The notes beneath the pieces were generated by a model that had not been told where the DNA came from, made no database searches, and was given only the letters and a program-made list of their open reading frames with translations. The translations under genes and the position numbers were made by a program. DNA of 64,000 nucleotides, taken from Diadema antillarum (lineage: Eukaryota). Location of the stretch: assembly GCF_040938485.1 (NCBI RefSeq), contig NW_027270897.1:3100001-3164000 (forward strand). Direction: 5' to 3'. Numbering within the stretch: the stretch's first letter is position 1; each line of letters begins with the position of its first letter. Below, piece after piece: positions 2,841 through 53,557 of the stretch.

Positions 2841-3004
2841 TCGAATCTACCACTAGTGATGGACAGGCGACGTTTTCCTACCAAAAGGAGCTCTCTAATT
2901 ATCTTCTAGACGACTATGGCTCACCGACACTCCGCCCCGTCAAGAACGTCTCTCAGCCCGTTCAGGTCTTCTTCAGGATCCTGATCGCCCAAGTTATCGA
3001 CTTT
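2841..3004 (+). CDS. nAChR-like exon (mature N-terminus ...[50 protein letters not shown])
   Basis: Acceptor ctcttcctctactcctgcag, donor GTAAGT at 3005; LRPV motif and N-glycosylation site NVS. Confidence 0.9.
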
Positions 3005-6000: not shown

Positions 6001-9000
6001 GCACAAGATATTCAGCACACTCAAAATACAGTGTAACTTCATTTTTGTGTCCATTTTCACCATTTTATGAGGAGATATTATGTAGGAATTTTAGATTTTG
6101 GCGGCCATTTTGAATATCTCAAAACCCTCAAGGATGCAAGAGTTGCATCATCCAGATTCGAATTCAGCATTCTCAAAATACTTAGGGTAAAACCATCAAA
6201 GAGCATCGGGTAGACGGTGAAGCATGGTTAGGCCCAAAATCTTTCTTTGGCACCCAGACCAAATACAATTTTGTCTTCCTCATAATTTTATGTCCGAGAT
6301 GCCGCATAGCAAGATTGTCGGCTACTGTGAGCTGCTCGTATAGAAACACATTTTTGGACTTTACATCAAATCGACTTTGATATCTAAGACGAGGGATCTA
6401 CGACGAATATGCCATCCCTGCATCATGCGCAATGCTGGAAGATAGCACGGGATGAAATCATCGGCTGCTATGATGTTTTCGTTGATAGAAAATTTCGGAA
6501 TGTGACATAAATTGTGGAATTACCTCGTCATAACCCATAGTGTTTTGATGAATAAGGAAATTACGTTGTAACATAAATGAGGAATGCGTGACTCTAAGAA
6601 TTTCTCCTGCTACTGACATGGTACAACGTTCAGGATTTTTTTTTATTGTTTTTAGGCAAAGAAATCGTAATACATGGTTTCATTATCAAACCATGAAAGC
6701 TAAAAGCCTTCATCTTTAAAATCTCATAAGAGTCTTGAGATCAGAGATTGCCTCCCACCATTTGGACATGATGAGAGCAGGGGCATGCCAGGAGGCGGGT
6801 GAGTGTCTCTCTCCCATAAAGTGGGTATCTCACTGGATTAGAGAGTAGGTGGCGACCCTGCGGCGACTCAAGTCTCACTGGTCGCAGAGACGTCTCCGCG
6901 AAGTCTCCAAGACCCCGTTTACAGTGAGTGAAAGGGCCGGGCTCGGCGGCGGCCGAGCCCGGCCTTCATTTCACTGTAAACGCACAAAAGGCTAAATGCC
7001 GTACCAAAATCGGCCGCGCATTTGGCCAAGATCTGGAGGTAGTCTCGGCCGCGGCTCGGCCTTTTTTCACTGTAAACGCAAACTGGGCCAAATGCGGTAC
7101 CAAACTGCGACCGGCGCCCTCCCAATAATAGTGTTTATTTGCAAGTAGAGCGCCACTACGACAAAATATTGAGAGGTTTGAATTACTGTAAAAGCCCGGG
7201 CCGAGCCCTCAACTGTAGACGGACAAAACTGCGGGGCCGAGTACCGCAATTGAGGCCGGGCTCAGCCTGGGCTCTGCCCGGGCTCGGACCAGCCCTGCAC
7301 TGTAAACGGGTCCTAGAGACTAGCCTCTTCTCCGGGGAATCGAACATGTTCGATTTTTTTAGAAGACTTTTTTTTTTCAGTCTCCAGCTGGTCTCAGAGA
7401 CATCTCTTTAGTCGAGGAGACTAATTTTATCCGCGAGGTCTCTGAGACATCTCCTTGACCTTGCGGCGAATAATTGGTAACCTTCCGGAGACCTCTTTGA
7501 GACGTCTCCACGACGTCGCGGTGTGTGACGTCTCTGCGACTTCCGAACGAATAAGTTGTCGCCATGTTTGGAGACGTCTTGAACAGTCGTCGCCCTGGAG
7601 ACACCTTCATGGTGACAACGCAAGCCATCTCTTGATCGTTAGAGTCGCACGAGTCGCGGCAGTCGCGGTGAAGTCTCCTTCAACGAGATATAGGCCCTTG
7701 GTTCACACATGACACACATGCTTTTTATTGTCTCAATGTAATGTTTTGTCTCAATGCAGTGTTTCGTATAAACGTGTATGAATGAATATATTCATTTCAT
7801 TACAACTCAGTGTCCCCAGAGGCTAAAAGAAAATTAAAAGCCACCTGGTGTGTGTGTGTGTGTCGGGGGGGAGGGGGGGGGCGTTGCGTGGAGATCATAG
7901 TCATTAGATTGAATTGACCTTTTCCTCACCTAAGCAGCCATATCCGATCCATTCGAGATGGAACTCCGTTTGCAGATACGCACTTACTACATTGTTATAC
8001 ATTAGAATTACATAGTACTTATGATTGCGAATTTCATGGTACTTGCAGTGATGACGATAATCAAAAGAATGCTGTGAATTGTAATGATATCGATTATAAT
8101 GCCATCATGGATATCTAATAACATTGAACCTTTTAAGTAAAGAAAACATTAATTGAAGCAGAGTACTTTTTAGTATCTATAATGATAGTGATAGTAATTA
8201 AAAGTGTGTAAAATAAATGAGAGAAATAATTCTCAGAAAGCCTGCATTTGGGTGCATCATAAAACAAATTCATGTTATTACAATTAGAAAGGATGTACAA
8301 AAGAAATTGAAATTGATATATTATTTACGTCAAAATCAGAAAATTCCTTCATCTGGTCATTTTACTCTCTCCCTTGGAGCATGAAGGCAGGTTGAATTAC
8401 ATGACAGACGAAAATCATTAATCTCAACGTTTCCGCGAAATTACCGGAAAGGAAACACAAAAAATACATCATAAGCGCCTCAACAATCATAAATTATCTC
8501 AGAAAGACACGGTTTTCTCCATCGTCTGGCTTCCCTTACGGGTCACTTCCCGCGTGGTCGGCCACCATGTTTGGTTGAGCAGTCAGCAAGGATTTGTGCG
8601 CGTCATGGAGCAGTATTAGGACACACGTGGTCACTGCTGTAGAGTGTTAATTTGGATAATTGCACACTTCGTCATAACCAGAACCGATGAATGATTAATG
8701 ACAGTGGATTTATCCTCTTTCCCTGCTTTTCCGCACGCTTTGGACCTTAGCTGTCTGTAATGAAAGGCACAGGCTTTTGCACTTGGTGGCAATATAGCAG
8801 TTACTTTCGGTTGATTACGGGGAATATTTTCCCCGTTTTCACAGTATTCTGTTGATAATCTTTCACTTATTAACTATCATCATTTCCGAATATGTTTTTT
8901 TACAGTCTTGATATGTCGAGGGTTCTGCATTTTGTAAATACGTTGTGACCATGCAATAGAGACTTGAACAGAACTAGGCCCTGATCTTTCAATTCTGATC

Positions 9001-13600: not shown

Positions 13601-16600
13601 TAGGGAACGTTAAGCTTAATTGTTTCATTTCATGCTGCTGATGTTAAAATGAGAAGATAAAAGTTCGCAAATAAGCAAAGATTAGTAGGCAGGAAAAGCA
13701 ATAAAAAAAAAAAACTCCGAGATGTCAAGATGATAAAACGTAATAATTTGACAGTTTTAATTGTAATTGCATGAATAATTAAACATCTATAAAATCAATA
13801 ATTTTTGTCACATTTTAGTATTGTATAATTATTTTTTAATGAAATAATTTACCATGGCAACTGGGAGAAGACGTCAGAGGATATTACTAGGGTTCTAATG
13901 CAATGACACAAGTAATTACAAATCTATAAATATAGTCACTATTGATACACTTTACTATTTGATGATATAAAACATGTATTTTAACAAAAAGAGCGATTCG
14001 TTGCCATGACAAAGGGAGAAGACATCACGGGCTCAATATCTAAATCTACCGAAAATATATCATTCAGCATGTGTGCTAACTTTGGCGCTTTTAGATAGAA
14101 ATGAACAATTGGTCAGATATTTTATCTGTTACTTTGCCGCTGAACTATGTGGCCAGAATTTAAATTAAATCTATTTAAGGAATGTTAGTATAACGAACTA
14201 CACTCACTCGTTATTTTGTTGTTTTCGTTATGGGAATATTAGGGAGCTTTAGATTTTCGCGACGGGGACGTTCAATGGAAAAGAAACCCTGTTCTGAAAT
14301 TACGCAAAATCGCTTGTCAAAACCGATCTATTTATACCTTGCGTCGTCTCAGTTTCCACTACGCGTCCTGGGCTAGTTTTACGTCCGCTCAAACCACGAC
14401 GAAGAGAGCTACTTTAAGCACTGATCGTAATGGGGGCACCATTTTAATTCTTATAAGTCGCGTTCTCGCGTAATCTAAAGCTACTCTTCAGCACGACGCG
14501 GGGAGAGAGGAGAACGTCCAACACCATCGTCGTATCAAATGTCCGCGTCGCAAATCTAAAGCTCCCTATTGAGGACTTTTTGAACGAATTGACAAGACAG
14601 CCTTTACTGGGGATGGACTCGTCAAAGTGCTCGAGTTGTCAATCTCTCAAAGAATGTGTTGATTCTACTCGAGGTCGAAGAGCTGAGTGAATGTGGCGAG
14701 AGATAAACATGACGTCACAGACCAGAAGACCATTCGAGATAAAGGGCATCAGTTTATGCCAGAGTAGACAGGTGCAATAATGTGATGCCAACTCAGAGAT
14801 TAGAAATGCGTCATCATTATGAGTAGCAATCTACATCGTCGTCGTGCAAATCGGAAGTCCGCATCCACTGTAAATTGCACAATATTATTCGATGGCATCT
14901 CGTTTTAGCTTTATCAGTCGACATCTATATTATCTGATAATGAGCAACGTTTGTTTTTAGAAATCATTCCAATGCGCAGACATAGTCAACATTTCTTCTG
15001 GGCCTATTTCAGCGGTTTTTCACAATAATTTCCTACATGCATTTCTGTCTGTCTTTGCCCCTATTCAAACATTTACCTTCGAGATACGTATCGATCTTGG
15101 GAACAATCTGCCTATTTATGTAACCATCCATCCAACTCTTTACTTGTTATCTCTCTTGAATCAATCCTTACTCTTACATTAGCCTAAAGATAGTAATTAC
15201 TGGGTCCAACCGATGATGAGAATTCCGCCGGCTCAAGTAAAGAATAAATATTCCCTTTGGGAAGCAAAAAAAAAAAAAAAAAAGGTGGAGATATTTGTTC
15301 TAAGTTTGCGATGGATGACATAACTGATGCAGTACAAATTATTACACGCAACCACCACTGACAACCTTTTTGTCAATGTCAACAATACTGAGTGAAGTGT
15401 AATAGCTGAGTGATATGAGCGTGCATCATTGTCAATTTAGGCTAACTTAACGTGCGTGCAGAGTTTGCGCTGTTAGGGAGTGCCTTTTTAATATGCCTGG
15501 CCTTTTCATAACAGTCATTACATTATTGTGAACACGTATGTGCTGTGAGTATGGGATTTGTATCTATTTCATCTTTTTCTTCTTTTTAAATGAAGAGTAT
15601 TGTTGACTCAAAGGGCAGACGAGGGTTTCCTGATGCTGTTCCGTAAGTGACTTTTTTGAAGCTTGTAAGAAAGTTGACATCATGGAACGTACCTTAAAAA
15701 TATTATCTATGCAATTATTTAACGTCGCGTTAATATCTATAACAGAACAAAATGATACCTGCTTTTATTAGTGAAGACGACTGAAAAAAAAACACCTAAG
15801 GTATTCTCTCCGTTTTGAAATTTCATCAGCTTCTCTTGTGATCTTTTTCTTCATATTTCAGAACGAAAAGGAACAGCAGATTACAATCAATGGATGGAGG
15901 CGCATGGTAATTACCTCTTTGTACTTTCAAAAACAATAACCACTCAGAACAAAGGTATGAGATTCCGTAAATGATGTTACCTGTTCACGTCTAGATTAAA
16001 ACTTTTCATACGCCAATTAAGATACATTAGGGGAGTTACCCAAGATAACCTGTTTAAAGAATTTAAGCAGTGGTCAAATTCTACCAAAATTGTTGTTTTT
16101 TTCGTCATTTCTAAGATATCAGATATATTGATATCTGTAATTTTCTATTTTAATACCTGCTGGCTTGTTTAGCTGTACCGTCTAACTGGACCTTCTTCAC
16201 ATACACATTTCATTAAAGATTCCTCGGAGTCCCTAAAGCTGAAAGGTCCGGACGTTTATCTTATCATTATTTACTTTTTTATTTTCGTTTATTCTTATTT
16301 ACTTGTTCTACGTTACGCACCATGAACTAACCAGGCATATAGTAATGATCAATTTTAATAACACATGTAGTTCAGTATGGGTCTTTCCTCGAATAAGGAA
16401 ATTAATAAACGAAGAATTGATTATCAATGCATTAGTCAATTAATCAATATTAATGGGTCAGTGAAGATTTAACGATATTTTTGTCTCCGTATACATTTCT
16501 CTCCTTTATTTCACTCTCTCTCTCTCTCTCTCTCTTTTTCTCCATCTACCTCTCTTTCTTTTTATTGTCTCTTCTTTCTCCTCCAGAGTTGGCTGGACCA

Positions 16601-19600
16601 TTTCCTGAAGTGGAACAAGGAAGATTACGGCGGCATCGACACCCTGGAGGTCTCTCCTTTCAGCATCTGGCTGCCGGACGTGAAGTTGTTAGAAAAGTAC
16701 GTTTGTTTGTTTGTTTGTTTGTTTGTTTGTTTGTTTATCTGTCTTTTTTCTGTCTTTTTGGGGATTGTTTAATTGTTTGTTTGCTTGCTTGTCTGTCTGT
16801 CTGTATCCACAGTCAGATTACTACGCTCATCATTTTCCGCATCTTCAGCTTCGTCAACAGCGCACCGCAGACGATTGCCATTGCCATTACAAGTGCATGT
16901 ATATAGGGCCATCCTTATCTTACAGTACAGTCCATTATGACTTTTAAAAAAAATCCTCAAGATTACAGTTTACCGCTCATTCCGCGGGACTATCTGTTAC
17001 CACAGTAAAGTCCGTGACCCGCTACATCCAACGGAGCCATAAGTCGGGAGTGGCCGATTGCTGATAATGGCATAGGGCATTTTATCTCTATTCCTCTTCT
17101 CTAATATAAAATATGATTCATGAAACAAAAATGCCCATGAACAGACATTTCGAATGCTGTAGGAGAGCATAGAGAGTGGGCCTGGAAATTTGTGTTTCGA
17201 GAAAACCACCTTCAAAGTTTTCATTGCAGCTGACACCACGTGTCTTTATCTACCGTTTTCTATTTGCCATTACGTTTATTTTGTCCACGTCATTTTCTTT
17301 GACATTTTAAGAACGCTATAGTAATTAAGAAGGAAGATCCAAAGATACCGAACAGAAAACTTTGTCGAACGAAAAAAAAATCCTAAACCGCAATTAGTAT
17401 TTTTTTCTTACTTTAATATGTTGCCGAAAGAACGCCTTAATGCACTGCATCATTTGATATCAAAACGGTGCGGTGATAACAGTCATCCTGTAAAACGCAA
17501 GGACGTGTCAAATACGTTTTCTTTCGCATCTTCTGATATGCTTTCGTGTAGCATTTCTTTTCGTTTTCATAATTCACGACGCACTGTCGTGTTTGCTTTC
17601 CACAGCTGATACGAGGCAGTTCTCAGACTGGTGTAAACTGTCATGGTAGAGACGAGCAAACTGCATATTAGGATCTGTTAAACAGACAAAGAAAATGTAG
17701 AAAGAATGAGGAGAATAAGATATGTAAGAAAAAGGACTGAGAGGAAAAGAAAGAGACAGAGAGGGGGAATTACACTGGCGCGACTCATCTTGTTTCACTG
17801 CTCATTATCATCCCACACCTATAGGGCCTCTGTTATAAAAAGTTTCAATAGTACTAGCCATTCATTTTTGTTTATTAGAAGTCCATGCTGACATGAGTGT
17901 ATTAAGGAAAAACTTACGATGGATTATAACTCTGTGAACAGGGACCTGGTCCAGGGCTTGAACTTGTATCCTATGTGTATACATTTAATGAGGTGCGCGT
18001 CTCGCTGAAAAGAGGAAAGCCGTTTTAACAAACAGGCGAGGGCCTGTCACACACACCATGATCATTTTGAATTCTACCATAATGTCTATGGGTTGATTCT
18101 CTGATCATTACCATAACTGAGGGATTGTCTGCTTTATGTTTCCGGAATGGATTCTGACTACACTTACGTTCAGACGGTGATCCTTAGCTTAGCGGATAAG
18201 GTAACTTCGAGAATAATTTTGTACTTATGCATGGGGCGCCAAGTGTCGCATGGTCTTTTTCGTTTTTTTTTTCGTTGACAAGTGACAAAATCGATATCAT
18301 CGACGAAATCAACATTTTGCTAACGACATTACAATTTCGTCACGGAATGACAATTTCGTCATTTAGTTGACGAAATTGACGTTGTCCCTTGTCAACGAAA
18401 AAAAAAAAAATTCGTGACGAAAGGGACAATGAGACACTTGGCGCCCCATACTTAACTACGAGCTTATCCTCGAAGTTAAGGATCACCGTCTGAACTTGAG
18501 TGTGACGTGGAATGTAGATTTTTTAAGAATAGTGCAGTCCAAGGCACAAAAGGTTACTGTATTTTGTCGGAGATATACCTTGCAAATAATGAAGAAAGAG
18601 ACAGAGTTGAGAAGAACGAGACGTTGAGGATAGTTAGGTGGTTATGTGTGGATGATGTAGTTATTTGAGCTCTGCTTTATCCGTCGTCATAACATATTAT
18701 TTAACAACCCCTCCTGTTTCGATGTTGTTGCAATCATTTCAATATTCCCTTCTTCTTCCCTTTGCTTCTTACCAGGGAGGTTGAAGAATTATTCCACCTC
18801 CCTGGTTCGACAAGGTGCCTTAATTTATCTGAAAGACACCAAAATGCATCATAAGCTGTCGCCTTTTCTAAGGAGAGAATGATCCACCGACAGCGTGGGT
18901 AGAAAGCCGAGAGTTCCAAAAGTCGAGAGTGGTGTGGACAAGGAAGGGAGTAGGGATGAAAAGAGTCTTGGTTTGTGTTTCAGCTACAGACCAAATCCGA
19001 TGCATCTTCGTGCTTATGATACAAGATGACAAAATTATCATGATCATAAATCAAGATTGCATAGATGTCTAAGATGTTGAAAATTTATGTTTAACAACCA
19101 ATCAGTGTATAAAAATTTCATTATTATGATTGTGTTGGCAAAGACAGTATTTATTTTGATTTAAATTGTTATGTTATGTTGTGTTATGTTATGTTATGTT
19201 ATGTTATGTTATGTTATGTTATGTTATGTTATGTTATGTTATGTTGTTTAAAGTGTGGCGTAATCATAATCCCCTCCAATGCCCCAGTTTAAACCGTTAT
19301 CGACGCTAACTCTGGCAGAAGGACTTCGAAGGAGGTTTTAGAATCCCTGGCTGAGCGCGTCTGTCATCCATGTACGAGATATTTTCAACTTTAACATAGT
19401 AAATTTTAGTGTTCATTCCTACTTGGAGAGTCAAAGCACATCCCTGCAGTTCTCGAATCTTGCCTTATCCTCGGATTACCTTTCAAACGATTCTTTGGCT
19501 GGTTTCGTTGTAGCCACTTACGTCTGATGAGTGCAGACAGAGCTCACTGTGTTAGCCCTCCTCCGTTCATCGCCCAAAGTTTGCCCCGAAGTTACCATCT

Positions 19601-22600
19601 TTATTGTTGAAAAGTACGCGTGTAAACTCAGACTCGTGTTTTCCACATGAAATATGAGTTCATTCCTGTTTAAAAACTTGATGATTGCTGGCGTCGATTG
19701 TTGATTAGGTCCACAGGTCTTCCTAAATCAATATTGATTGAGTTCTTTGGTATTGTGTACCAAAGCTCGCACCTAGGTTGCCTTCGGCCATTTCTGTTCT
19801 ACACTGTTTTCGGAGCTAGGGCTGCACCGCTAATAACTAATCGTTAAATGTTGCCACGCAAGAATGAAACAGAAAAATAAGTTGGGAGGACCACATTATG
19901 ACTGCTTCATGGTTATTACCCCCCCCCCCCCCCCCCCCCCAAACACGACCATCATCAAACTACATTGTCAAAATGGGGTGCTGGGTTAGAAAAAAAGCCG
20001 GTCCACAATCCCGTTTAGTCTAAAATAATGTGTTTGCTGATTAGGACATAAATAATGTAAGTGCTGCGAAGGAAAAACATGAACATTTATACAGCGGCGT
20101 CTTTGTTGCTAATCACTTTCATGAAGCTCTAATAGAGTAGCCATATTGCGCCCGAAGAAGAGCACGCCTATCAACAGACAATGGAAGTTCGACCTACATT
20201 TTATCTGTTAGCGTGCTGTGTCCTGAATATCAATGTAATTAATGACAAGCTTGTACCGGATGGGTAGAAATCAGCTGCCAAGTAGGGTAATAGCATGACT
20301 CACTAAAGATATCTTGGACCTTGAGCCAGACGGGAACAAAAATGTGCCATGTATCACCATACTTTATTTCATACACATTATTATCATGTACGCCAATTGC
20401 CCAGGGTTTTAACCTGTTATCTCATATTCAGACTCTCGGCTGAAGTGCATGATCTGTTGATTATTTTGTTTTGTCGATTAGAATACACTTCAATCGAGGA
20501 TACGAGGTTGATGATTTCCAGTCCTGCGTGAACAATGCTGAAAGTATTAAATATGCATTAATGATTGGTAATCTACACAAACACACTCGTATCAATAGTG
20601 ATAGACAGATAAATACATAAGTAAATGGACCGGCATGGCTGTTACAAGTAAAGCGGATCACGGTTTTGATCTTCCAAGCGGTTATCAACATTTGCCTGCA
20701 GGCAAACTTTTGTCTTTCTTTCGATCATTTAGTCACGAAACTTCCACAGATGGCGGAAAAACTCTTGGACTACATAATCATGCCGATAACAGAAATCACT
20801 GATTTTGACTACTGTTGGCAATCTGATGATTTCAAACGTGATTTTTTTTTTCATCTCAGCTGTTTTCCACCATGCCGACTCCGGAATCATTTCGTCATGG
20901 CGGGTCACTTTTTGTCTCTTCACCCATTATTTCATATCATACAACATGTGCGTTCATATTGTATTCTTATTTAAAGTTGAATAAATGTTCATCCTTGTGT
21001 TGTTACCGTTTTTTTAAGAAGAAAGTGTTAAAATCTCATTGTTTGAATATCTCCAAAATATGCTGACAGAACAACAACAAGAAATCAATCGCAGACTGAA
21101 ACTAGAGATTGTAATTTGTCATCACTGACAAATTAAGGTGATCCGATTTTTTTTTATCAATGATTAGAGTCCTGATTGCAATAGGCATGACCATACAAGT
21201 TCCATCTGTGTTTAGAGACATTGGCCGTGTGAGCTAGTGCTCGATAAAGACAATCATGTCAATTTTCACATTTAAAAAAATTCCCTCCCATAGAGATAAC
21301 ACGTCATAACGAAGATACAAAAAGAAGTACATATGACCTTTGACCTCAATTTGCACAGACAAGATGGCATCTGAGTAAAAAGTAGTTATTTTGTGAAATG
21401 ATCCTTGTAACATGGTCTTTGCGTGTGCAAAATATGGGAAAGATAGTACAGGTATTCACTAAGATACAGGATGAAACACTTATGACCTTTGACCCTAATT
21501 TACATACCCAAGATGGTGTCTGATCAAGTAGTTGTTATTTTATGAAATAATTTACGTGACATGAACTTAACATGTGCAAAATATGGAAGTGATAGAGGCC
21601 GTTTTTCTTGAGTTATTGCAAAGAAAGTTGCAGAAAGAAAGAAATATCTCAATACATCGAAGATAAGCTTGAATTTCAACCAAAATCTTTGACGTGATCT
21701 CGACAGCGTATGAAAAAATGAAGGGCACACTTACGGTAGCGTTAAGTCTCAGCTACAACATATTAAAATCTGGGAGAAATTTACCGAAGGGTAAGTGAGC
21801 TAGTGCTCGATAAAGATAGTCATGTCAATTTTCATTTCCAGAAAAACTGCACTCCCGTAGAGATAACACGTAAACTGGTCAAATTTGACAAGATTACTTT
21901 CAATCCATTTTTACGAGGTGATACCGTTATCCAATCAAAACTTTGTAATTTTGTGTTTGTAAGAACATTAAATAAGCTACAATATACTGAAATCTGGGTG
22001 AAAATTGACAAAGGACTAGTGAGATATGCTCGAATAAACTTGAAATTTGATGACGTCATTTTGAAAATTCACTTTTTTTACTTTATTAAGAAATTTGATA
22101 TCTTTTGATCATTTTGTCAGCATTACCACCCCATGAAATGACATGTACAACTCATCAGCTTTCAAAATATGTAAAGAAAATGGGGGGTCACCGTCCATCC
22201 TGACGAGTAAAATCGGATTTAAAATTGGCGGTTTTTTGGCATAGTTGCACTGTATATCGCCATTGACGCGCGCGCGGAATTTAAACTTTGATTGGCCCGT
22301 ATGACGTCATATTGAGTCGGATCGACTTGAAACTTGGTAGAAATATTCCTTGACATTTCAGACATTCGATCCGTGCGATAAGACGGGAAATTTCTATTGC
22401 ATATGAGCTGTGCGTGCGTATATGCGCGCGCGCGTACGCGTCCGTCCTATTTTTTCAATTTTTCAAAAAATGCTCGAAATGGTCTGAAACGTGTGCAAAA
22501 AAAATTTGAGCTCGATTTGAGCATACAAATATTTCAACGCGCGCGTACGCGCACGTACCAAGACAAATGTGAATTTTGAGAATATGAGTAGAATGCGCAT

Positions 22601-25600
22601 AACTTGAAATATATGTGACGTAAATTTCATTGAAAAACTTCATTCCATTAATGAGATATGATTGAGAATGTGTTTTCATATAATGACGTCATAGTGACGT
22701 CACGGTCGACTAATCACTTTGATTTTAGTTCGATTGCCGTCTTTGGGACACGATACATACATGGTATAAGTTTGAACTTGATAGGCATAGTACTTTCTGA
22801 GCTAACCTCTGCACAACTTTTGGGGAGAAATAAAGAAAGAAGAAGAAGAAGAAAGAATCCGTACAGATACAATAGGTGATCCGAGAGGATACTCGGATCA
22901 CCTAATTAAACAAACCAGTCATGTTAACCAGCTTCTTGTAAAGAAAAAGACGACCCTGCAATGTCCTGCAAAACGTGTAATGAGACGAAATGACCCAGCC
23001 GCACCCACTCGTGTCACTGTTTTGCTATGAAATGACCTCGTGACGAGTGCCCACTTCTATACTGTAGTGTTAAGATAATATGATAATCTATCCTACTAGA
23101 GTATCGCTGAATAGATGTGGAGCGACAGTATGTTTGTCCAGTGGTATCGTTTTCACTCCTGCAGTCATTTCCTCCTGCACTTTATTCCCATCTCATACTT
23201 CCACACCCAGCATCGATAAGGACTTTCAGAGCGAGGACGCCGTCAATGCCATCGTCCAGCCGGACGGTATGGTGGAGTGGTACACGCCCATGGTGATCAG
23301 CAGCTCGTGTAAGATCAACGTGCGCTACTTTCCGTTCGACACCCAGACGTGTGTGCTGACCTTCGGCTCCTGGGCCTATGACACCATGTCACTGGACCTC
23401 AACTACTCCGACGACGCCACTCAGGTATCACTGATCGTAGCTGATGAGCTTTTCTCGTGATACATGATGTACAATCTAACCTCAGTTATCTTCCCATCCT
23501 GATAAGTGAGATATGCTCAAGCAAGGCACTTTTATGCAAACTGAGCAGAGGTATTAAACGTAATGTATTGTTGTTGTTTTGTTTTTTGTTTGTTTGTTTT
23601 TTGCTATTTGCAACGATGATTCGCATCATATTTGCACGTCTAATAAGTCAAAGAATGTAAAAACAAATGGATTGTGAGTAGATTTACACCTTCCAGTTAA
23701 TCTTGTCCCTTCTAGAGATATTTTGGATTGTAGATTTACATGGTATCAGGGTAATTAACATCTATTTCCCGAATCTCTTAATTCCATGAATTTGTAAGAG
23801 AAAAATGCTAAACGCAGTTAAGCCGGTGCCTGTTCGTGTCCGGATAATAGAGATATCCAGATTAGTGATGGCTGGATACTGAGGTCGGTCTAACTTTAAA
23901 AAGGGCGATTAAACAGGACCTTACATACATGTAACATGAAGTACTTGATATTCTTATATCTAATTTGAAATATTCCAGAACGGATTCACTATGACACAAA
24001 AGTTGCTGTGTTGTTTTTGTTTTCAACTGCTGAAACCTGATTTTGAAAGATTAACTATGTTGCAGACTACATCCTACTCATCATGATTTTTTTAGTTCGT
24101 ACAAGTTCGAAATGTGGTAATATGGAAACCGAGAAGTTATAAGAATGTGAATGCAATATCGACACGTATACTCCTATCGCTCTGCCAATTAAGCCGGGTG
24201 GGCCCTTTAACAAAACTGTGACATAAGATGTACACTTCCTTTTAATTGTCATGTTAACATCAATACAATTAAACGGGACTTGAATCTTGTGTTTATTCTA
24301 TCAATTCAGAACGTTTTTCTCAACAACGGCGTCTGGGATTTGCGCACGATCATGGTAGAGCGGGAGCTCCGGTTTTTCTCCTGCTGTGAGCACCCTTTCA
24401 GCTACGTCGTGGTGAGGCTCGTTCTCCAGCGCCGCTACGAGTTCTACGTTTTCAACATGGTGGCGCCCTGTATCATGTTGTCGGCTATCAACGCCTTGGT
24501 GTTCCTGGTCCCGCCCGAGTCAGGCGAGAAGATCTCGTTCTCCGTGGCGAACCTCCTCGCGTCGATTCTCTTCCAGCAGCTCATCGGCGAGCTGATGCCG
24601 CCCCTGGGGGACGAGATCCCCCTCCTAGGTGAGCTCCGGGCCGACAAAACAAGTCATCCTGCTATACCTCTTTACGAAAGGGACGACCCTTTACCAACAC
24701 ATCCCCCTTTCGTGCTTTATCTTTTTTTAATTTGTTTCCTCGTGTGAGTTTTCTGCAATATTTTTGTAATACATGTTAATTGCTTTTCTAGTCCTCTATT
24801 CTTCATCTGTTGGTTTCACAAGATCTGCGAATTTGATAGTAAGCAACGAGAAGAGTCGTGCATAAGTGCACACAGTTCTTGAATATTTTTTTTTAATCTG
24901 AATTACATGGTGTTGCCTAGAATTGGTTACTGGTAGCGTAATGATGAAAAGTATTATGTTGTTTGTCTTTTATTTTCCGTTGATACAATTTCTTATATGA
25001 GTAACGTATTAATAAAAAAAAACACACATACACACAAATGATCAACAGACGTTACTTTTCTCCAACCTCACGTAATTATGAAAGTATCGGCATGACACTT
25101 TTTTGAATGGTGACTTTACCAAGTGACATGCTTACATTTGATTGTGATGTTTGCGTGCTTTACACTGATTTACCTCACGGTCTTCTTTGTCTTGTACTCC
25201 AGGTATGTTCTTTCTTTTCATGGTTGGGATGAGTTGTCTAGCACTGGGAGCCAGCGTCATGATACTGCGCATGTACCATCGCCTGGGCGACGAGCCCGTT
25301 CCATCGTGGCTGAGACACGTCTTTCTCCGAGGTGGTCTCCTTCCTTACTCCATCAAGCGGGCCAGGGCGGCGTTCACCAGACAACAGAGCAAAAAGTCGC
25401 CCTGCCAGAATCGGGAAGGTGCCTACCGACGCAGCAGCAATTGCAGTGTGTCGCTCGTGAAAGAAGGCAAGAACGACGTGCATCTCAGTCTAACGGAGAA
25501 CATCCCCGCCTCCATACATGACAAGTCTGACAAGAACGCCCCCTGCAAACTCTACGCGGACTTCGACGAGGACTTCGATGACGAGACGACGATGATGAAG

Positions 25601-35987: not shown

Positions 35988-38900
35988 GTAATTCTCCGTG
36001 TTTATATAAAAATGTTGACTGCATATCATTCTTAACAGGAGTATTTTATACATAACCCATTCATTGATGGTCCCCGTCATCAAGTGATCATACTTTTAAA
36101 TTTTCCAGGCTCTCCCATATTTCCATGTGTCGTACTTTGTTGCCAATAACTTGCTACACAAACAATGACAAACGGTGTAGAGCACCTGATTATCAAATGA
36201 AGACTTTGTTCGTTTGTTTGTTCATTTTCCATCTAAGAAGACGGCTGCCTAGCCCACATTCAGCTACACATTGCTGGTCTTCCATGGGGTCCAGTCTGAT
36301 GTTATAGGCGGGACCACTTCACCGGGTTAAACACCCTGCTCTTTGCGATGAATTAATGAAGCATGATCTTGTACGTGTTTATATGAGTTGAAACTCTCTC
36401 ACGCACGGGACTTTCATCTTATGTCCGATCTGAGGGACAGAGTGCTTTGCCTCTTACTAGAGGGGACAGTATGATTACACACAACATTGCTCAGAGAGAC
36501 TCGGGAATCGAACCCGGGCCCTTTGCATCTGGAGGCAGACGCGCTGCCCGACTGAGCCAACTCTCAGAGTCTTCGAAGATTCGGCTGTGGACTTTAAGAA
36601 TCGGTGAAAAAACGTGGTCAAACACTGTAGGTCATTCCTGCAATTATTGGATTGCAATAATACCTTCAGTGTAAACATTTATCATCATGTAGCTTTCTTT
36701 TTCGCTCGAAGGTGACCGCATAAGAACCTCCTCAGAAAGGATTATTTTTCCCTCTTGTCGAGGAGGAGGTAGGGAAGAGCAAACATAATTTCCTTTCATT
36801 TGGATGTAAAACGACATCCGTGCAGAGCTCATCCAGGGACATTGGTTAGTGAGAACCCCAAGAGTACTGGAAGACAATCTCTACACTTCCAAAATTATGT
36901 TTATCTAAATTCAATTTTGTTAAAGTTATAGGAAGACAGAATTTTGATGGAATGCACAAAAATTACTTAGTATTATCAGTATGCATAAAGTATACACATT
37001 GTTGGCAGTATATTGCGTACATACTAACTTTCTCGATTGGATTTACCATGGACCTACTACACACACGTATACCAGGAACGGAGGTCTTTCTTTAAGCCCA
37101 TCATCACCGCCGCCATTTGATTTTTGTGTGCATCTTGATGAGTGGTACATTCACATGTTTGGACAATGATAAGTGTGTAATCGTGCGTTGTCACTGACAA
37201 AAATAATAAGAACCGTTGCCCTAATGTCGGTCTTATTTGGCTGAGGTGCCTTTTCAGACTCAACTGCCTTTGAATAAACATCAGTGATGGGGAGCAGCAG
37301 ACCTCAAAATATGACAAATTTTGTAAGACAAAATTAGTAATTACTGAAGTGGACTCTAGTCTTGTAGGCACGCATGTAACGTTGCTTAATAGTAAGACAT
37401 ACATGTCATCTACCGTGGTTACTGGCCATGTTTACTCTGAAACAATGTGCGAAAAATGGCAAAAGTAAGATTACAAATCACATTCAACCTGCCAAAATGT
37501 TTGCTTTCTCTCGTAAAGTAAGTGTATTTCAAAAATGATATTGGCTGAGCGATGATATCCCAATGTACATGCATTTTCTTGATTTGAGAGACTACTATCT
37601 TCTTCGCATGTAGGTTTTAGATTTCTCGTAGCGCCGTTTTGTTTTTATCCACGCTGGCTGTCGGGAGAAGGAAAGGATAGGTATGACCAGGGAGGTGTTT
37701 TGTCTCACCTCCCTGGTATGACTATGGAGTTTTCATCACAGGTGTGCCTGTTGGAATGTTTCGATACAACGTGATATCACCTGGATTACTGATCAGCAAA
37801 GCAAGACATGTTTTCTCGCTCAGGTGCAAATTGTCAATTTTGTTTACCAGGCCATAATGGGTTTACTGGTTACGTAAGAGATTGAGTGCGGCAATATTTA
37901 CACGAAGGAATTTTATGTACACAGTAGGCCTACACATGCATTTACAACGTGAAGCTTGATGATAGGATCATCAATGTTCAAACAGAGACATTTGCTTTCA
38001 CAGCTTTCTTATAGAATACAAATAGGATAAGAATACGTAGACTTAACATTTCTAATGTCACAAGAAAGAGAGTTCGAATTATCGGGTCCGGTGTCTCTAA
38101 AAGATTTCAGAGCCATCATCATTTTAGGATTATATAAAAGATGTTTGTTTGTTTGTTTTTTCAGATTGTCTTGTAGAACACGAGTGTATGCATTTGTTCA
38201 ACTGCCTTACATTATAAGCTGTCGAAACATGAAGAATGAATTTTGAAGAAAGTTAATGGCATCTATACCTGGTTAATTCTGCCAGGGAGGCTCACCTCCC
38301 TGATTCTGCTCATGAAGAATCTTTCAAGGCCATTAATGGTCTGGCCCCAGGATACCTGTCTTCCCTAATCTAGCGACGGCAGACTCGTCCTGGCCTTCGT
38401 TCATCTGGCCTTACTCTCCAGGTGCCCATCACACATCTCAAGGGATACGGAGACCGGGCATTTTCTTCTATTGCTCCTCGCCTATGGAACTCCCTCCCAT
38501 CTTTCCCTCCTTGAAATTGACAAACTGGATCACTTCAAAGCCTCACTCAAAACTCACATTTTTCACCGGGTATTCAACTGTCTTGGAGGAGTCTGTGCCC
38601 TTTGGATGTTTCTATAACAGATTATATGGCGCCATACAAATGCTGTGGATCATCATCATCATCATCATCTGAATGATCCTAAGAACCCGAGTTAGCGCAT
38701 ACACATATAGCTTTCTAATATTAACAATCAGCCCCAAACAGGTTTCATCTTTCCCTCATTCAGTGCGCTTCTCCAGCCGTCCACAACAATGTATACACAC
38801 ATATGAAACATCTATAACTGGCTTTGCATTTCAAAGAATTCTTCATTTCTATAAATTACGTCACACCGAGCAATATATCGAGAGAGCTTTAAATAATCTC

Positions 38901-41900: not shown

Positions 41901-44531
41901 CAAAAAAGAAAGCAGCTGTATTCTTCATTCTTGTGCTGCTAAATCATTTTTCAAACATACAGTACGATATATTTGATTCTTTTTACCAAATCATACCCTG
42001 TTTTTATAAGAGAAATGACATAAAAATCTGCATAATTCTCAGAAAAAGCTATTTTGATCAGCCTAATCAAGCCAATCCGAATGTGCCTTATCACTCACAC
42101 ACCGAATAAGAAATGTGTGCTACTCAATCACTTTTTTACTTAACTTCCTTCTTTTTTTCTTCTTTTTTTTGGCAGAGCACACGCTATATACATAAATATA
42201 TCAGATAAGGTATAACTCTTAAAAGGGAAAAACAATTCTTGATCAACTTGATCAGATTGCTCAATATCCACTCTATTACATAAATTCTCTTACACTCTCT
42301 TGAGAATACAGCATTTCCTGAAACATATCATATAAAAAGAATTCTTTACTTAACCGAGCAAAACTCATCATTTTTTTTCCATCTAACCTATCAACCACCC
42401 CTCCCACCCCCCGTACAGCACAAAATAACCATATGTGTATATCATCAAAACAAACCATATTCCTGCCTAACCCCTTAACCATTATTCTACTGTTGCCTAA
42501 CTACATCTACCTAACCCTAACCATCCCCACCTATTTCCCCACTAACATACCCCCGTAGCCTTCCCTCAACTAAACATTTTACATGGGGGAAAAAAAAGTG
42601 ACCACCATAATGCTGATACATATACAGATTCCTAAACATTAATACGGCAAAAACCTTTATAAACTGACCATACATCTGACTCTATGAAAGTTTCAACTGC
42701 TCCCATTTTTGCAAATGAAAACCAAGCTTACCTGCTTTAACCGCAACGTTCTTTTCCTCCTCTATAAAATCCAAAACAAATTTCTTTATCTTTTCCCTCT
42801 TGGGTAACTTATTTTGTTCTCTTGACCGAAATATTACAATTTTCATCAAAATTATCAAGGCATTCACGCATTTGATTCGATTTGAACTACCTCGTAAACC
42901 CAAGAAGATATCTCTCCATTCTAATTCTTCTAACTCAACTAAATCATAAAACTCAATAAGAAACTGCCATATCGGCTTTACTTTCACACAATCAAAAAAT
43001 ATATGTGAATAAGTTTCCCTTTCCAATTGACAAAAAGAACAAAGATTATCATTCACAAAACCAAACTTAAACAAAATGTTCCCTTGTATATATCACCCCG
43101 TGTAACAACTTAAACTGAAATTCCCTATGTTTACTAAGTAAAGTCGTGCTTCTAGGTCTAATAAATAAATTTTTAATTTCCTTATCACTGAAATCATACT
43201 TCACTTCACCATATCTTATTTCCAGGGTATACAATTCTTGTAAAACTGTAACAAAATACTCGTACACTATTTTTGACTTAATATTTTGAAATTCTAATAT
43301 TTTACCAAAAATCTTCACCTGTATATCATAATTTAATACATCAATTTGCTGAAACCTTACACTCCCTGTGGACTCTTTCCACTTTTCTGGAAAAACATTA
43401 TAAATATCATTTATCTTAAATATACCATTTCCCATGATACCTAAATTTCGAAAATACCCAACGGGTTTAATAAAACCTCCTTGTAAAATATGATGTACAT
43501 TATAAACACCCTTTTCATATAAATCACAATAAAAAATACTCTTCCCTTTTATACATATTTTTCTATTATTAAATATAACTGGATTCATCACTTCATCTTC
43601 AAAATTCCTACATTTATCCATTTCCTGCCATACCTTGACCATTTCTAAATTAAAAGGTGGAACTGGATTTGTCAATGTCAATCTAGACCATTCATAATCA
43701 CATAAAAATAAAAACCTTCCTCCTACTGATCGAAAACTAAAATCAAAATACATTTTCCACCCAGATTTCTTCTCACCATACAATAAACGTTTCAACCACA
43801 TAATACGTTGCGTTTTGACAAACAGCTTAAAATTTATCTTTCGCAGTCCCCCATTAACATAATCTTGATACATAATATTCCTTTTTACCCGGTCTTTACC
43901 ATTCCACAAAAATTCAAAAATCATCTTATCCAATTCAGGAAATATCCATTGAGGAACAACTATGAGTGATGAAACATAATTTAACCTTGATAATGTATAA
44001 GTTTTCAACAGATGAATTTTTCCCATGAGTGTTAAATCACGCTGTTTCCACCATCCTAACAATTTTTTTTTTATTCTACTTAATATTTCTTTAAAATTGA
44101 TCTCATTCTTCCCCCTCACATCTCTTGCAAAATTCACCCCTAAAATGTTAACTGCATCAACATATTTTCCAGATACAGATAATACAGGTTTCTCTGTATC
44201 CTTACCCATCCACAAAAAAAAAAAATCAATTTGTCTTTATTTACAATTAAACCGCTTATTTTCCCGAATTCATAAAAAATATACTGTAACCTATTTAAAG
44301 ATTTTATGTCCTTTATAAACAACGAAATATCATCCGCATATAAAATTTGCTTTATTTCATTCCCCCCAAAACATATTCCTTTTACAGTGTTATCTTTCCT
44401 TACTACTTGTGCCAGTGTTTCAATTACTAATAAAAACAAATACGGAGACAGGGGATCACCTTGCCTAACCCCTCTCTTGATTTTGAAATAACCCGTAGAG
44501 TGCCCTCCATTCATAACACAACTGCTAATAT

Positions 44532-44580
<49 letters not shown>

Positions 44581-47500
44581 GATTACATTGCATGTACACG
44601 AAGTGGTCCACATGCAGCTATTTTTAACTTGCATCAGTAATAATAAATTATTCAGACAAGGCGTAAAAAAGGAAAAGAAAAATAGGACACACTGATAAGG
44701 GAAGAGATAATAATGTCTACATCTTAATGTGGACATGCCTTTCAACCTAAAAAAGATTTGGCAGGGCTGCACTAAATTGTGTGCAGGAGTGTGTGATGGT
44801 GACTCCTTTATTCGCACTATAAAGAACGCCGAGACATCTTGAATATAGTATCTCAGAGGAATTGTGGCTGTATGTGTGTATTTATACTCATATGTTTTTA
44901 AGTGTTTTAGCCCCACTTCACTACACTCCTTCGGAAAAGAGGAGCGCAGTGAGCTAAGATATTACTCCAAACACTTCTACCACAACTATTGCACAAGTTT
45001 TCCTTCTTCATCTTCTTTTTCAGCGTTTGCTTCTTCATATTCTGTTCCTTCTACCCTTTATAAATCTTTCCTTCCCCTTCACAGAATGCACTCGCTGCCC
45101 TCTTTCACTTACTATTACGTTAATGTAGTAGGCCCTACCTTTTCGGAATGTGAATTTACTCGGGCTTGCAACGGACCTCCACGTGAAATTCCACATATTC
45201 AATTTTACCCCAATCGATAGAGTAGAATAAGACAAACGAAATACCACAGGCTTCACAAATCCGAATAAACGAGTAAGAAGCGCTATCTACTGAAGCCAAT
45301 TTGAAAACGGCCGCGTTGATAAGTTGTACTTGTAGCTTCCTCTAATGAAGAGTCGATCCGATCCCTGTTCTTTTATTCAAAGTTCTGCAATTAAAGTTAG
45401 ATATATCATATCTCACTTTTACCAGCATTATCTTCATTGAGTGTGATATCCTAAGAAAGCCTGATTAATTATCTTTAAAATGACACCTCACTTGCTATGA
45501 CTGGGTATTTTTGGAATGTGCAAAACAGCTTAGTATGAGGACAGATCAAAAGTAAAATGTCGCAACAATTCTGCAATTGATAATGTACTGTTTCGATGAA
45601 AAAAAAGGCCACTGGAAAAAGCAATGCTGAAACGTGAGCACTTTCAAAATCTCTCATTTCCTAAACATTAGATGATCGTTTGGTCAACCTTAATGTTTGA
45701 TTTTAATCTGCAGATACTGTTGCAGTTTGTAATTCATGGATGAAGCCTGGAATTTAATGATAATCTCACAATGCATTCTTTCCAAGTACATACCTTCCCT
45801 GAAAAGACAAAAACAAATTGGGATTATACTGTCTGACATAACACATTTGCTCCATTTTGCAACATTTCAAATTTGACCTTTCCTCATACTCAGTTGTACT
45901 GTGCATTCCAGGAATGCATACTGCAAACAAGTGAGTTGTCATTGTAAAGAAAATTAATCAGGCTTTCTTATGATGTCACATTTGAATGGAATAATATAGT
46001 TTTAAGAGAAATATTATGATACATCAAACTGGAATTACAGGTCTTTTTTGAGGGGTTTACATGAAGTTCACTACATTTCTAATTCAATTTAACCCCTCGA
46101 CGTTACAAAGTATATGAGAGGGAACGTGTTTAGCCACATTTTTGATTCACTTTAAATCGCCATATAAATCAGTTGCTTGCTTTGATGTTATTATCACTCA
46201 CGAGCCCATTTTAGGCGGGTATTTTTTCCATCTTTCAGGCTCGTACCGCAATTCAGCAGACAAGTTTTTTGTCATAGCGAATTTAATAATCCTTCATAAA
46301 CATCTATTTTTAATGAAAGTTCAAGGTGAATAAACTTCTATTGCCATCAATACACGTTTCTACTGCTTTTTTGCAGAAAGTGGTTGACACGGTCACGGCC
46401 GATGGGGGCGACATTCATGCCGCGCAGTGCGACGTTTCGGATGAGGCGGCTGTGAAATCCCTCTACGCTGATGTTGAGCAGAGGTTTGGTCGGGTGGACG
46501 TGAGTGTGCAATGTGCAGGGCTCTCACGACCTGCACCACTGCTATCGGGCAAGGCGTCTGACTGGAGAATCATGACGGAGGTTTGCATTATCTTTTGACC
46601 AAGAAATAGTTGTCTTAAATACCTAAAGGCCTCTTCAAAGTCCTGAGAAAACCATCAACATAAACTCTTAATGATTGTATAATTTTCGCTTTTTATAATG
46701 CTGTGGGGAAAAATAATAATTTCAAATTTTCTAGTTTATTTTACATCTTTTATAGAAATACAACATAGACAGAAATGCAACATCTAAATTACATATCAAA
46801 TTTCACGTTAAAAACATAATCAGGGTAAAATTTTACTCAACAAACACAAAATAATTACTGACTAAAATTTACCCCTAAAAAGCCAAGCCCATAGGTAATC
46901 ATTTTCATAATAGTCAAGATTTTTTTCTGGGTAGGTTTTGTTTATTTTTTTTCCTGTTTCTATGCTTGTAGTTGCTTCTCATTTTGTAAGCTCCAATTAC
47001 CAAAACATACAAGTCATAAAAAATTCAAGATCGTCGAACTTATGCCATCAAGGCGGGAGAAACAGATCAAGACATAATGCCAATGGCACTTTCCTTCACC
47101 TGTCTCCTTTCGTTGTTATAGAGACAATACTAGAAATGGTATTGGCAGGCTACAGTTTTTGTTTTGTTTTGATTTTTGGCCCTAGTTGATCGGTTTGTTT
47201 CAACTTCTCTGTTATGACAGGTGAATGTCTTGGGGACGCTGTTTTGCTGTCGTGAGGCTGTAGATCTGATGAAGAAACACAACGTGGATGATGGCGTGTT
47301 AATAAACCTTGTTAGGTAATTTCCGACCAGATATCATAGTTGAGAGAGAGATCTGTATACTCGCTGGCTGGCGAGGGGCTGTGACCATGTATAAGTATCT
47401 TTGTGTAATCAAGTAGAAATGATGATACTTTCCTATCATTTATGTTGAAAATTCCAGAATCATCTCATGTCCTTCGTGTCAGAAGTAAAGACTAAAATAT

Positions 47501-53294: not shown

Positions 53295-53557
53295 NNNNNN
53301 NNNNNNNNNNNNNNNNNNNNNNNNNNNNNNNNNNNNNNNNNNNNNNNNNNNNNNNNNNNNNNNNNNNNNNNNNNNNNNNNNNNNNNNNNNNNNNNNNNNN
53401 NNNNNNNNNNNNNNNNNNNNNNNNNNNNNNNNNNNNNNNNNNNNNNNNNNNNNNNNNNNNNNNNNNNNNNNNNNNNNNNNNNNNNNNNNNNNNNNNNNNN
53501 NNNNNNNNNNNNNNNNNNNNNNNNNNNNNNNNNNNNNNNNNNNNNNNNNNNNNNNNN
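53295..53557. other. Assembly gap (263 N)
   Basis: Run of N. Confidence 1.

Follow-up and report, generated by a model that had tools for sequence, protein, structure and literature searches.

The gene analyzed here is an intact alpha-type cation-channel subunit of the Cys-loop nicotinic branch, located in a stretch of 64,000 nucleotides of Diadema antillarum DNA (here referred to as the window). It may well act within a heteromer, in a complementary or accessory role, a reading which we favor with some reserve. The subunit would probably be the partner of others or respond to acetylcholine (ACh) only weakly.

Exons 2 to 7 were found between positions 2841 and 25729 on the + strand of the window and encode residues 27-485 of XP_071489270.1 (P0259), which is labelled "neuronal acetylcholine receptor subunit alpha-10-like" by NCBI. 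Identity to this protein was 100%, all introns were of the GT-AG type, and neither a frameshift nor a stop interrupted the frame. Exon 1, which carries the signal peptide, is located upstream of the window. This exon is conserved in D. setosum, and the NCBI models of the D. antillarum locus differ from each other at the 5' end. The loop D exon was missed by motif and splice-site scans, since its sequence NGWRRM deviates from the usual N-x-W-L, and was located via the annotated protein. For single exons, which are too short for a length-filtered word search, an exhaustive representative search was used. Duplicated exons with canonical loops were not found within the introns by tblastn. A search of RNA runs yielded one contig of 158 nt from a single run, which lies in exon 7 and is uninformative on expression.

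Features of the alpha-10-like gene within the window (positions as in the window, residues in alpha7 numbering unless stated otherwise)
Feature	Position	Strand	Content	Evidence
Exon 2	2841-3004	+	N-terminal helix and beta1, residues 27-81 of the protein	tblastn, 100% identity; acceptor CAG and donor GTAAGT read
Exon 3	15862-15906	+	45 nt, loop D; Arg at Q57	alignment to alpha7
Trp55 codon	15895-15897		exon 3	
Exon 4	16587-16696	+	110 nt, loop A	
Leu at Y93	16689-16691		exon 4	
Glu at N94	16692-16694		exon 4	
Exon 5	23211-23424	+	loop E, Cys-loop, loop B	
Thr at K145	23359-23361		exon 5	
Trp149	23371-23373		exon 5	
Exon 6	24310-24628	+	loop F, loop C, M1, M2 (with Leu9' and Glu20')	
Phe at Y188	24376-24378		exon 6	
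Cys190/191 pair	24382-24387		exon 6	
Phe at Y195	24397-24399		exon 6	
Tyr at D197	24403-24405		exon 6	
PPESGEK	24511-24531		exon 6, M2	
Exon 7	25203-25729	+	M3, intracellular loop, M4, stop codon	

The exon translations matched the ligand-binding and membrane domains of Pfam (PF02931 and PF02932, respectively). An AF2 model was confident (pLDDT 83.9), with helices at residues 248-270, 277-299, 309-335 and 431-484, and its top Foldseek matches were alpha7 chains (E ~1e-36). The Cys-loop in exon 5 is complete, with 13 residues between the two cysteines and the FPFD motif. Comparison with M2 of alpha7 revealed the signature of a cation-selective pore, consisting of Glu at -1' (GEK), Leu9' and an acidic residue at 20'. 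The pre-M1 Arg, FPFD, GEK, Leu9' and Glu20' are all retained in the alignment. The vicinal Cys190 and Cys191, by which an alpha-type subunit is recognized, are present at the tip of loop C, and the complementary face is represented by Trp55 and conserved loops E and F.

Residues of the binding site were assigned by phmmer alignments to human alpha7 chains. These were without gaps through loops A, B and C, and the extracellular domain as a whole had a single gap of one residue, located in loop F. The tyrosines can therefore not be regained by a shift of register, which is anchored by W86-P88-D89, the Cys pair and P194. When compared to human alpha7, five positions were changed (Y93L, K145T, Y188F, Y195F and D197Y), whereas W55, W149, the vicinal Cys pair, the Cys-loop, GEK and Leu9' were unchanged. 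This is in agreement with an earlier note on this DNA: every residue listed there was found at its place in the gapless alignments, without a shift of register, and the exons confirmed that all three tyrosines and the K145 and D197 partners are lost in an intact gene. The features it had named as kept (W149, W55, the Cys pair, the Cys-loop and GEK) are present as well, although Trp55 and PPESGEK lie outside the interval it had given (16587-24420).

Consequently to these changes the ACh cage of the principal face is incomplete, being composed of Leu93, Trp149, Phe188 and Phe195 and not of Tyr93, Trp149, Tyr188 and Tyr195. The link Lys145-Tyr188-Asp197 is absent and occupied by Thr145, Phe188 and Tyr197 instead. 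Thr145 alone does not exclude gating by ACh, since alpha9 and alpha10 also have Thr145. Aromatic residues still occupy four of the five cage positions, the cation-pi Trp149 among them.

To what extent these changes are found elsewhere was surveyed among 148 relatives that have the vicinal Cys pair and Trp149. A complete lack of Tyr at positions 93, 188 and 195 was seen in six of them, three of which represent the Diadema gene itself. Single changes were more frequent: Phe195 was present in 41 and Phe188 in 16 relatives, including cnidarian and annelid sequences with Asp197. Thr145 and Lys145 were equally common (54 each), Thr145 being the state of vertebrate alpha9 and alpha10 and of many echinoderm relatives, and Asp197 was absent from nearly all sampled members of sea urchins, sea cucumbers and brittle stars. 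The earlier description of a "coordinately dismantled" site is thus overstated, as Thr145, the loss of Asp197 and Phe195 are all common to relatives, and on this distribution the Diadema gene did not lose these residues in a single coordinated step.

The Lytechinus orthologs have Phe195 in common with Diadema and are likewise aromatic at 197, yet retained Tyr93 and Tyr188. According to this comparison Phe195 is older than the Diadema-Lytechinus split. The sites of the two genera differ only by Y93L, Y188F and a Phe/Tyr exchange at 197, so that Phe188/Tyr197 of Diadema and Tyr188/Phe197 of Lytechinus are swapped residues; the states are identical in both Diadema species. As the cage of the Lytechinus ortholog is almost canonical (Tyr93, Trp149, Tyr188, Phe195), its (+) face may bind agonist at least there, which is a point against the accessory reading.

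Strong purifying selection acts on the Diadema gene. In comparison with D. setosum, dN/dS was 0.10 overall and 0.096 for the extracellular domain, and the two D. antillarum haplotypes were separated by 8 synonymous changes and by no nonsynonymous one. Between Diadema and Lytechinus dS was saturated, so that no ratio is given for this domain or for the gene as a whole. A consistent acceleration of the Diadema lineage was not found, the relative-rate test being significant with one of eight outgroups. One ortholog per genome was present in Diadema and Lytechinus. For Strongylocentrotus purpuratus, neither the protein search nor the 10 kb flanking regions around its paralogs yielded an ortholog, which does not prove a loss. 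A quick ML tree placed the gene into an echinoderm-only clade (SH-aLRT 100) outside of alpha9 and alpha10, with the forks linking this clade to alpha9/alpha10 left open. Both the selection analysis and the phylogeny had been suggested in the earlier note.

Conservation between Diadema and Lytechinus was unevenly distributed. M2 was 100% identical, and loop F (88%), the Cys-loop (93%) and loop E (72%) were more conserved than in the group of the neighboring paralog (56%, 53% and 56%, respectively). Loop C was the least conserved segment with 45%. However, it reached only 50% in the neighbor group, which has its tyrosines, and the low conservation is therefore not specific to the alpha-10-like gene. 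Both genera retained the Cys pair and Pro194, and position 195 is aromatic in each. This retention hints at a remaining role of the loop C tip, which runs counter to an accessory function.

The neighboring paralog (P0012 in D. antillarum and P0263 in D. setosum) has an intact principal face with Tyr93, Trp149, Tyr188, the Cys pair and Tyr195. Both genes are arranged head-to-head with start codons 3.1 kb apart in the two Diadema species, and the divergent orientation is also present in Lytechinus variegatus. Such an adjacency may persist simply from local duplication, which is a further point against the accessory reading.

Taken together, we would describe the gene product as a functional subunit of the alpha type, belonging to a clade of cation-selective nicotinic receptors which is confined to echinoderms and alpha9/alpha10-like. 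Its (+) face would have exchanged Tyr93 for Leu in the Diadema lineage, and with Phe in place of Tyr188 and Tyr195 two hydroxyls are missing as well, so that this face presumably no longer makes a high-affinity ACh site. The (-) face appears intact and unusually conserved (Trp55, loop E and loop F), as does the gating and pore apparatus. The subunit may co-assemble with paralogs of intact (+) face, the head-to-head neighbor foremost. In such a receptor its (-) face would take part in the agonist site, and the subunit would line part of the pore. Its role would then resemble that of vertebrate beta subunits, alpha5 or alpha10. The option of a modulatory subunit, which the earlier note had offered beside a new ligand, fits synteny and conservation at least as well as the latter.

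Other explanations have to be considered. The (+) face could bind a ligand other than ACh, more hydrophobic or otherwise different, and the receptor could serve chemosensation or other signalling, alone or in a heteromer. The rarity of the combination without tyrosines and its maintenance by strong purifying selection in both Diadema species speak for such a receptor, as do the retained Cys pair, Pro194 and Phe195. The Tyr/Phe swap at 188 and 197 between Diadema and Lytechinus also looks more like a repacking of the pocket floor than like decay, and precedents exist in Alpo4, which binds a sterol derivative orthosterically, and in the cephalopod chemotactile receptors, which are cited as ACh-insensitive (PMC10338036). 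On the other hand, a pocket that kept Trp149, Trp55 and aromatic residues at four of the five cage positions is still suited to a cationic amine. No more than two of the tyrosine losses are confined to the Diadema lineage, and a single-copy gene with a dN/dS of 0.10 and without consistent acceleration is unlike a diversifying sensory family. We therefore regard a re-tuned (+) face as unlikely and the arguments in favor of a new chemosensory channel as weak. More doubtful still is the fuller proposal that the subunit, alone or with its neighbor, forms a channel whose orthosteric site is re-tuned to a non-ACh ligand and in which the 188/197 exchange would be an adaptive repacking.

It is also rather improbable that the subunit is simply a cholinergic one of low sensitivity, whose (+) face would bind ACh or choline via cation-pi interactions with Trp149, Phe188 and Phe195 at a much reduced potency. 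The Phe substitutions stay aromatic and only hydrogen bonds are lost (PMC4621750). Phe195 and Phe188 occur in many relatives, as described above, Thr145 is normal in alpha9 and alpha10, and the cation filter and gating elements are intact. However, Leu at Tyr93 takes away one wall of the cage, and the three changes together are expected to compound. In mutagenesis of muscle and alpha7 receptors, a change of the Tyr190Phe type alone moves ACh potency by orders of magnitude. The view that the site is decaying in a gene drifting to loss of function, or that the model is an annotation artefact, could refer to the single exon 7 contig, the missing S. purpuratus ortholog and the disagreement of the NCBI models at the 5' end. 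It is strongly disfavored and hardly credible in view of six intact window exons with canonical splice sites, the low dN/dS between species, haplotypes without any nonsynonymous difference, an M2 identical to that of Lytechinus and the signal-peptide exon conserved in D. setosum. We retain the complementary or accessory subunit as our tentative explanation.

Echinoderms possess their own radiation of nicotinic-type subunits, and we know of no electrophysiology for any of its members. The orthologs provide a natural experiment, since Lytechinus has Tyr93 and Tyr188 and Diadema does not, in an otherwise conserved background, and both adjoin a paralog with a canonical site. This contrast bears on the question whether the clade is cholinergic at all, and also on whether subunits of the alpha type can become complementary-only by such changes. 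With regard to annotation, "alpha-10-like" is a label of similarity and implies neither orthology nor a ligand. If the (+) face were indeed re-tuned, this would be a first echinoderm case of a nicotinic-derived receptor for a sensory function or a novel transmitter.

The chemotactile receptors of cephalopods are sensory genes which multiplied lineage-specifically and diverged fast. In contrast, the Diadema gene is single-copy, with a dN/dS of 0.10 and no consistent acceleration; the likeness suggested in the earlier note does not extend to the evolutionary mode, and there is no phylogenetic link since the gene sits in an echinoderm clade. The cephalopod receptors are described as nicotinic-derived and ACh-insensitive, with a remodelled orthosteric pocket and without common signature ligand motifs (PMC10338036), whereas the Diadema gene kept Trp149, Trp55, the Cys pair and two further aromatic residues. 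Alpo4 of Alvinella pompejana, an orphan nACh-like receptor of an invertebrate, stems from a radiation restricted to its lineage. Its binding site is modified, and the orthosteric site binds a sterol derivative (PMC10338036). Here the pattern is opposite to that of Diadema: the aromatic residues Phe103, Trp159, Tyr199 and Tyr205 are kept and the vicinal cysteines are absent (PMC10338036).

Further comparisons are provided by Lytechinus XP_041464938.1 and Acanthaster XP_022082963.1, which belong to the same echinoderm radiation and share the M2 signature LFQQL and the Cys pair. At positions 93, 188 and 195 they carry Glu/Phe/Phe and Leu/Trp/Phe, respectively, and XP_041464938.1 lacks Trp55, unlike the Diadema gene. 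As they represent other paralog lineages (not placed on the tree), their tyrosine losses are taken as independent.

The vertebrate subunits alpha9 and alpha10 are gated by ACh. In the protein search they came out as the best-named relatives. They have Thr145, Arg at Q57, the F-Q motif in M2, the vicinal cysteines and GEK in common with the Diadema gene, but retain Tyr93, Tyr188, Tyr195 and Asp197, which the latter lacks. Alpha10 depends on heteromeric pairing (PMC8634148). Alpha5 and beta3, although not closely related to the Diadema gene, are accessory subunits unable to contribute to the orthosteric site, and CHRNA5 is clustered with CHRNA3 and CHRNB4 (PMC7744819). Alpha5 is an alpha-type subunit outside of the orthosteric site which nevertheless shapes channel properties and whose gene is clustered with those of its partners (PMC7744819). 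Since the (-) face of the Diadema gene is intact and unusually conserved, a beta-like complementary role would be as likely as a pure fifth-position role.

The gene encoding the nicotinic-type alpha subunit XP_071489270.1 (P0259) consists of seven exons, of which exons 2-7 are carried by the window on the + strand. Every junction was GT-AG and the frame was open from end to end. In Pfam the translations matched both domains of neurotransmitter-gated channels, the ligand-binding one and the membrane one. Using the translation of exon 6 as query, an exhaustive protein search gave a 464-residue protein which was 100% identical across this exon and which a cluster look-up identified as Diadema setosum XP_072164228.1. 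The same look-up gave D. antillarum XP_071489270.1 (485 aa), whose residues 27-485 are matched exactly by the window. Both proteins are annotated as "neuronal acetylcholine receptor subunit alpha-10-like", and the gene itself is already annotated. Exon 1 with the signal peptide is located beyond the window; on a sister D. antillarum contig, approximately 31 kb separate it from the downstream exon 2.

Features of the window (positions in nt)
Feature	Position	Strand	Remark
Exon 2	2841-3004	+	
Exon 3	15862-15906	+	
Exon 4	16587-16696	+	
Glu codon at alpha7 N94 position	16692-16694		
Intron 4 segment	21101-22904		~1.8 kb
Exon 5	23211-23424	+	
Exon 6	24310-24628	+	
Exon 7	25203-25729	+	
Short-chain dehydrogenase gene (adh_short)	~33000-36000		
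Negative GC skew	42001-44000		-0.46
Negative GC skew	44001-46000		-0.19
Assembly gap	53295-53557		263 N

The window and the sister contig shared 96.7% DNA identity. Since the D. antillarum assembly is uncollapsed (1.73 Gb, bioRxiv 10.64898/2026.05.24.727502; the D. setosum assembly has 886 Mb, PMC11066563), the window was taken as the other haplotype of the same locus. Both contigs were collinear except for the intron 4 segment. This segment was missing from the sister contig; it probably represents an insertion specific to one haplotype, perhaps of a mobile element. In the NCBI model XP_071486150.1 (421 aa, from one D. antillarum contig) exon 2 is left out, and the protein begins with 17 residues of unrelated sequence. 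The window contains an intact exon 2, and the sister contig's 485-aa model appears to be the right one. A short-chain dehydrogenase gene is found downstream of the receptor gene on both contigs. Further downstream, a strongly negative GC skew suggests a strand-biased repeat block, and one assembly gap is present.

To describe the agonist site, exons 5 and 6 as well as the whole protein were aligned to human alpha7 chains by phmmer (alpha7 numbering is used throughout). The alignments had no gaps in loops A, B and C. Compared with alpha7 the subunit carried Y93L, N94E, K145T, Y188F, Y195F and D197Y, while W55, W149, Y151, C190/C191 and the Cys-loop were retained together with the pre-M1 Arg, Glu-1' (GEK), Leu9' and Glu20'. 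The changed and kept positions listed in the earlier note were thus read correctly, including Trp55 and GEK, which stand at the protein places it gave though beyond its interval. A shifted register restoring the tyrosines was excluded, as W86-P88-D89, the Cys pair and P194 anchor the alignment. The AF2 model based on a 62-sequence alignment was confident (pLDDT 83.9; >90 in the greater part of the extracellular and membrane domains) and had alpha7 chains as its best structural matches.

With the full protein as query, a word-based search gave a list of 174 relatives. Frequencies were counted in 148 relatives carrying the vicinal Cys pair as well as Trp149. Of these, 99 had Tyr93, 127 had Tyr188 and 101 had Tyr195; Phe195 (41/148) was found more often than Phe188 (16/148), and Thr145 was as frequent as Lys145 (54/148 each). 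Only six relatives had no tyrosine at any of the positions 93, 188 and 195. Three of these six were the gene under study, the others one Acanthaster, one Lytechinus and one Lineus protein. Ile or Val has taken the place of the loop A tyrosine in other sea-urchin paralog groups. Although the combination as a whole is rare, its single steps recur in the echinoderm radiation. The Acanthaster protein XP_022082963.1 has kept the Cys pair and carries Leu/Trp/Phe at 93/188/195; the Lytechinus protein XP_041464938.1 has likewise kept the Cys pair, carries Glu/Phe/Phe and has also lost Trp55. Glu at the N94 position was found in 24 of the 148 relatives. Many members of the echinoderm clade show x-E-N in loop A in place of Y-N-N/S/K, and frog 5-HT3A-like sequences in the same alignment also carry this Glu. 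A carboxylate beside the cage could be relevant to ligand choice.

The maximum likelihood tree placed XP_071489270.1 inside a clade made up of echinoderm sequences alone (30 of 49 rows, SH-aLRT 100). Sea urchins are represented in it by four strongly supported paralog groups, and these are sister to a sea-cucumber pair. As the tree gives this clade no firm tie to vertebrate alpha9/alpha10, "alpha-10-like" is to be read as a similarity label. Thr145 is the state in vertebrate alpha9, alpha10 and many echinoderm relatives; gating of alpha9 and alpha10 by acetylcholine is established (reviewed in PMC8634148). Nearly all sampled members from sea urchins, sea cucumbers and brittle stars lack Asp197. 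The Diadema gene has Phe195 and an aromatic residue at 197 in common with its orthologs from L. variegatus and L. pictus (68% identity). The latter kept both Tyr93 and Tyr188, so that among the positions listed in the earlier note the two genera differ only by Y93L, Y188F and an exchange of Phe and Tyr at 197. Outgroup states point to Tyr93 and Tyr188 as the ancestral residues. The pair is Phe188/Tyr197 in Diadema and Tyr188/Phe197 in Lytechinus. In nicotinic receptors the side chains at 188 and 197 are adjacent (the muscle Lys145-Tyr190-Asp200 link), hence in Diadema the hydroxyl may have been relocated between the two positions rather than lost. An acetylcholine site "coordinately dismantled", as had been proposed, goes beyond the evidence: the changes accrued stepwise across the history of the clade, and the cage is still largely aromatic.

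Within Diadema the gene is under constraint. Over 458 codons compared with D. setosum, dS was 0.174 and dN 0.0175 (dN/dS 0.10), with regional ratios of 0.096 for the extracellular domain, 0.078 for M1-M3 and 0.125 for the intracellular loop and M4. None of the 17 amino acid differences affected the binding-site or kept positions. The two D. antillarum haplotypes differed in 8 codons, all synonymous, and M2 was 100% identical to the Lytechinus ortholog. Taken together this rejects neutral decay, and a decaying gene is highly improbable. In a relative-rate test the Diadema branch was not consistently accelerated.

A 476-residue paralog, XP_071489268.1 (P0012), is located head-to-head with the gene in D. 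antillarum, the start codons being 3.13 kb apart. The signal-peptide exon is conserved in D. setosum (positions 6773-6847 of the locus L003; 88% identical to its D. antillarum counterpart), and 3.15 kb separate it from the start codon of the neighbour. As the model XP_072164228.1 of that species opens instead with a 5-residue exon and lacks a signal peptide, its 5' end is mispredicted. The orthologs of both genes are likewise adjacent and divergent in L. variegatus. The neighbour group retains Tyr93, Trp149, Tyr188, the Cys pair and Tyr195. Between Diadema and Lytechinus, the gene under study versus the neighbour group showed identities of 88% and 56% in loop F, 93% and 53% in the Cys-loop, 72% and 56% in loop E, and 45% and 50% in loop C.

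The alpha-type cation-channel subunit XP_071489270.1 is intact and constrained. Its principal (+) face has lost hydroxyls and part of its aromatic character, and its complementary (-) face is well kept. The subunit belongs with the divergent invertebrate nicotinic-type subunits lacking assigned pharmacology. A (+) site of low cholinergic sensitivity is rather unlikely, even though Phe loses only hydrogen bonds and stays aromatic (PMC4621750). A site re-tuned to a non-cholinergic ligand, for which Alpo4 and the cephalopod chemotactile receptors offer precedents (PMC10338036), appears similarly doubtful. The chemosensory emphasis of the earlier note exceeds the evidence, since the gene evolves as a conserved single-copy neuronal-type subunit and not as a diversifying sensory family.

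We tentatively favour, at somewhat less than even chances, a subunit that would work within a heteromer. There it would pair its complementary face with the canonical (+) face of its partners and contribute to the pore lining. The partner would most simply be the divergently transcribed neighbour, whose principal face is canonical. Against this stand the Cys pair, Pro194 and Phe195 still present in the subunit, the near-canonical cage of the Lytechinus ortholog XP_041453750.1, and a loop C which is as variable in the neighbour group. No description of the altered binding site was found in the literature searched. The main value of the gene lies in the testable contrast between Diadema and Lytechinus and in the conserved head-to-head pair. 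In the proposed heteromer the Diadema subunit would play a part similar to that of beta subunits, of alpha5/beta3 (PMC7744819) or of alpha10.
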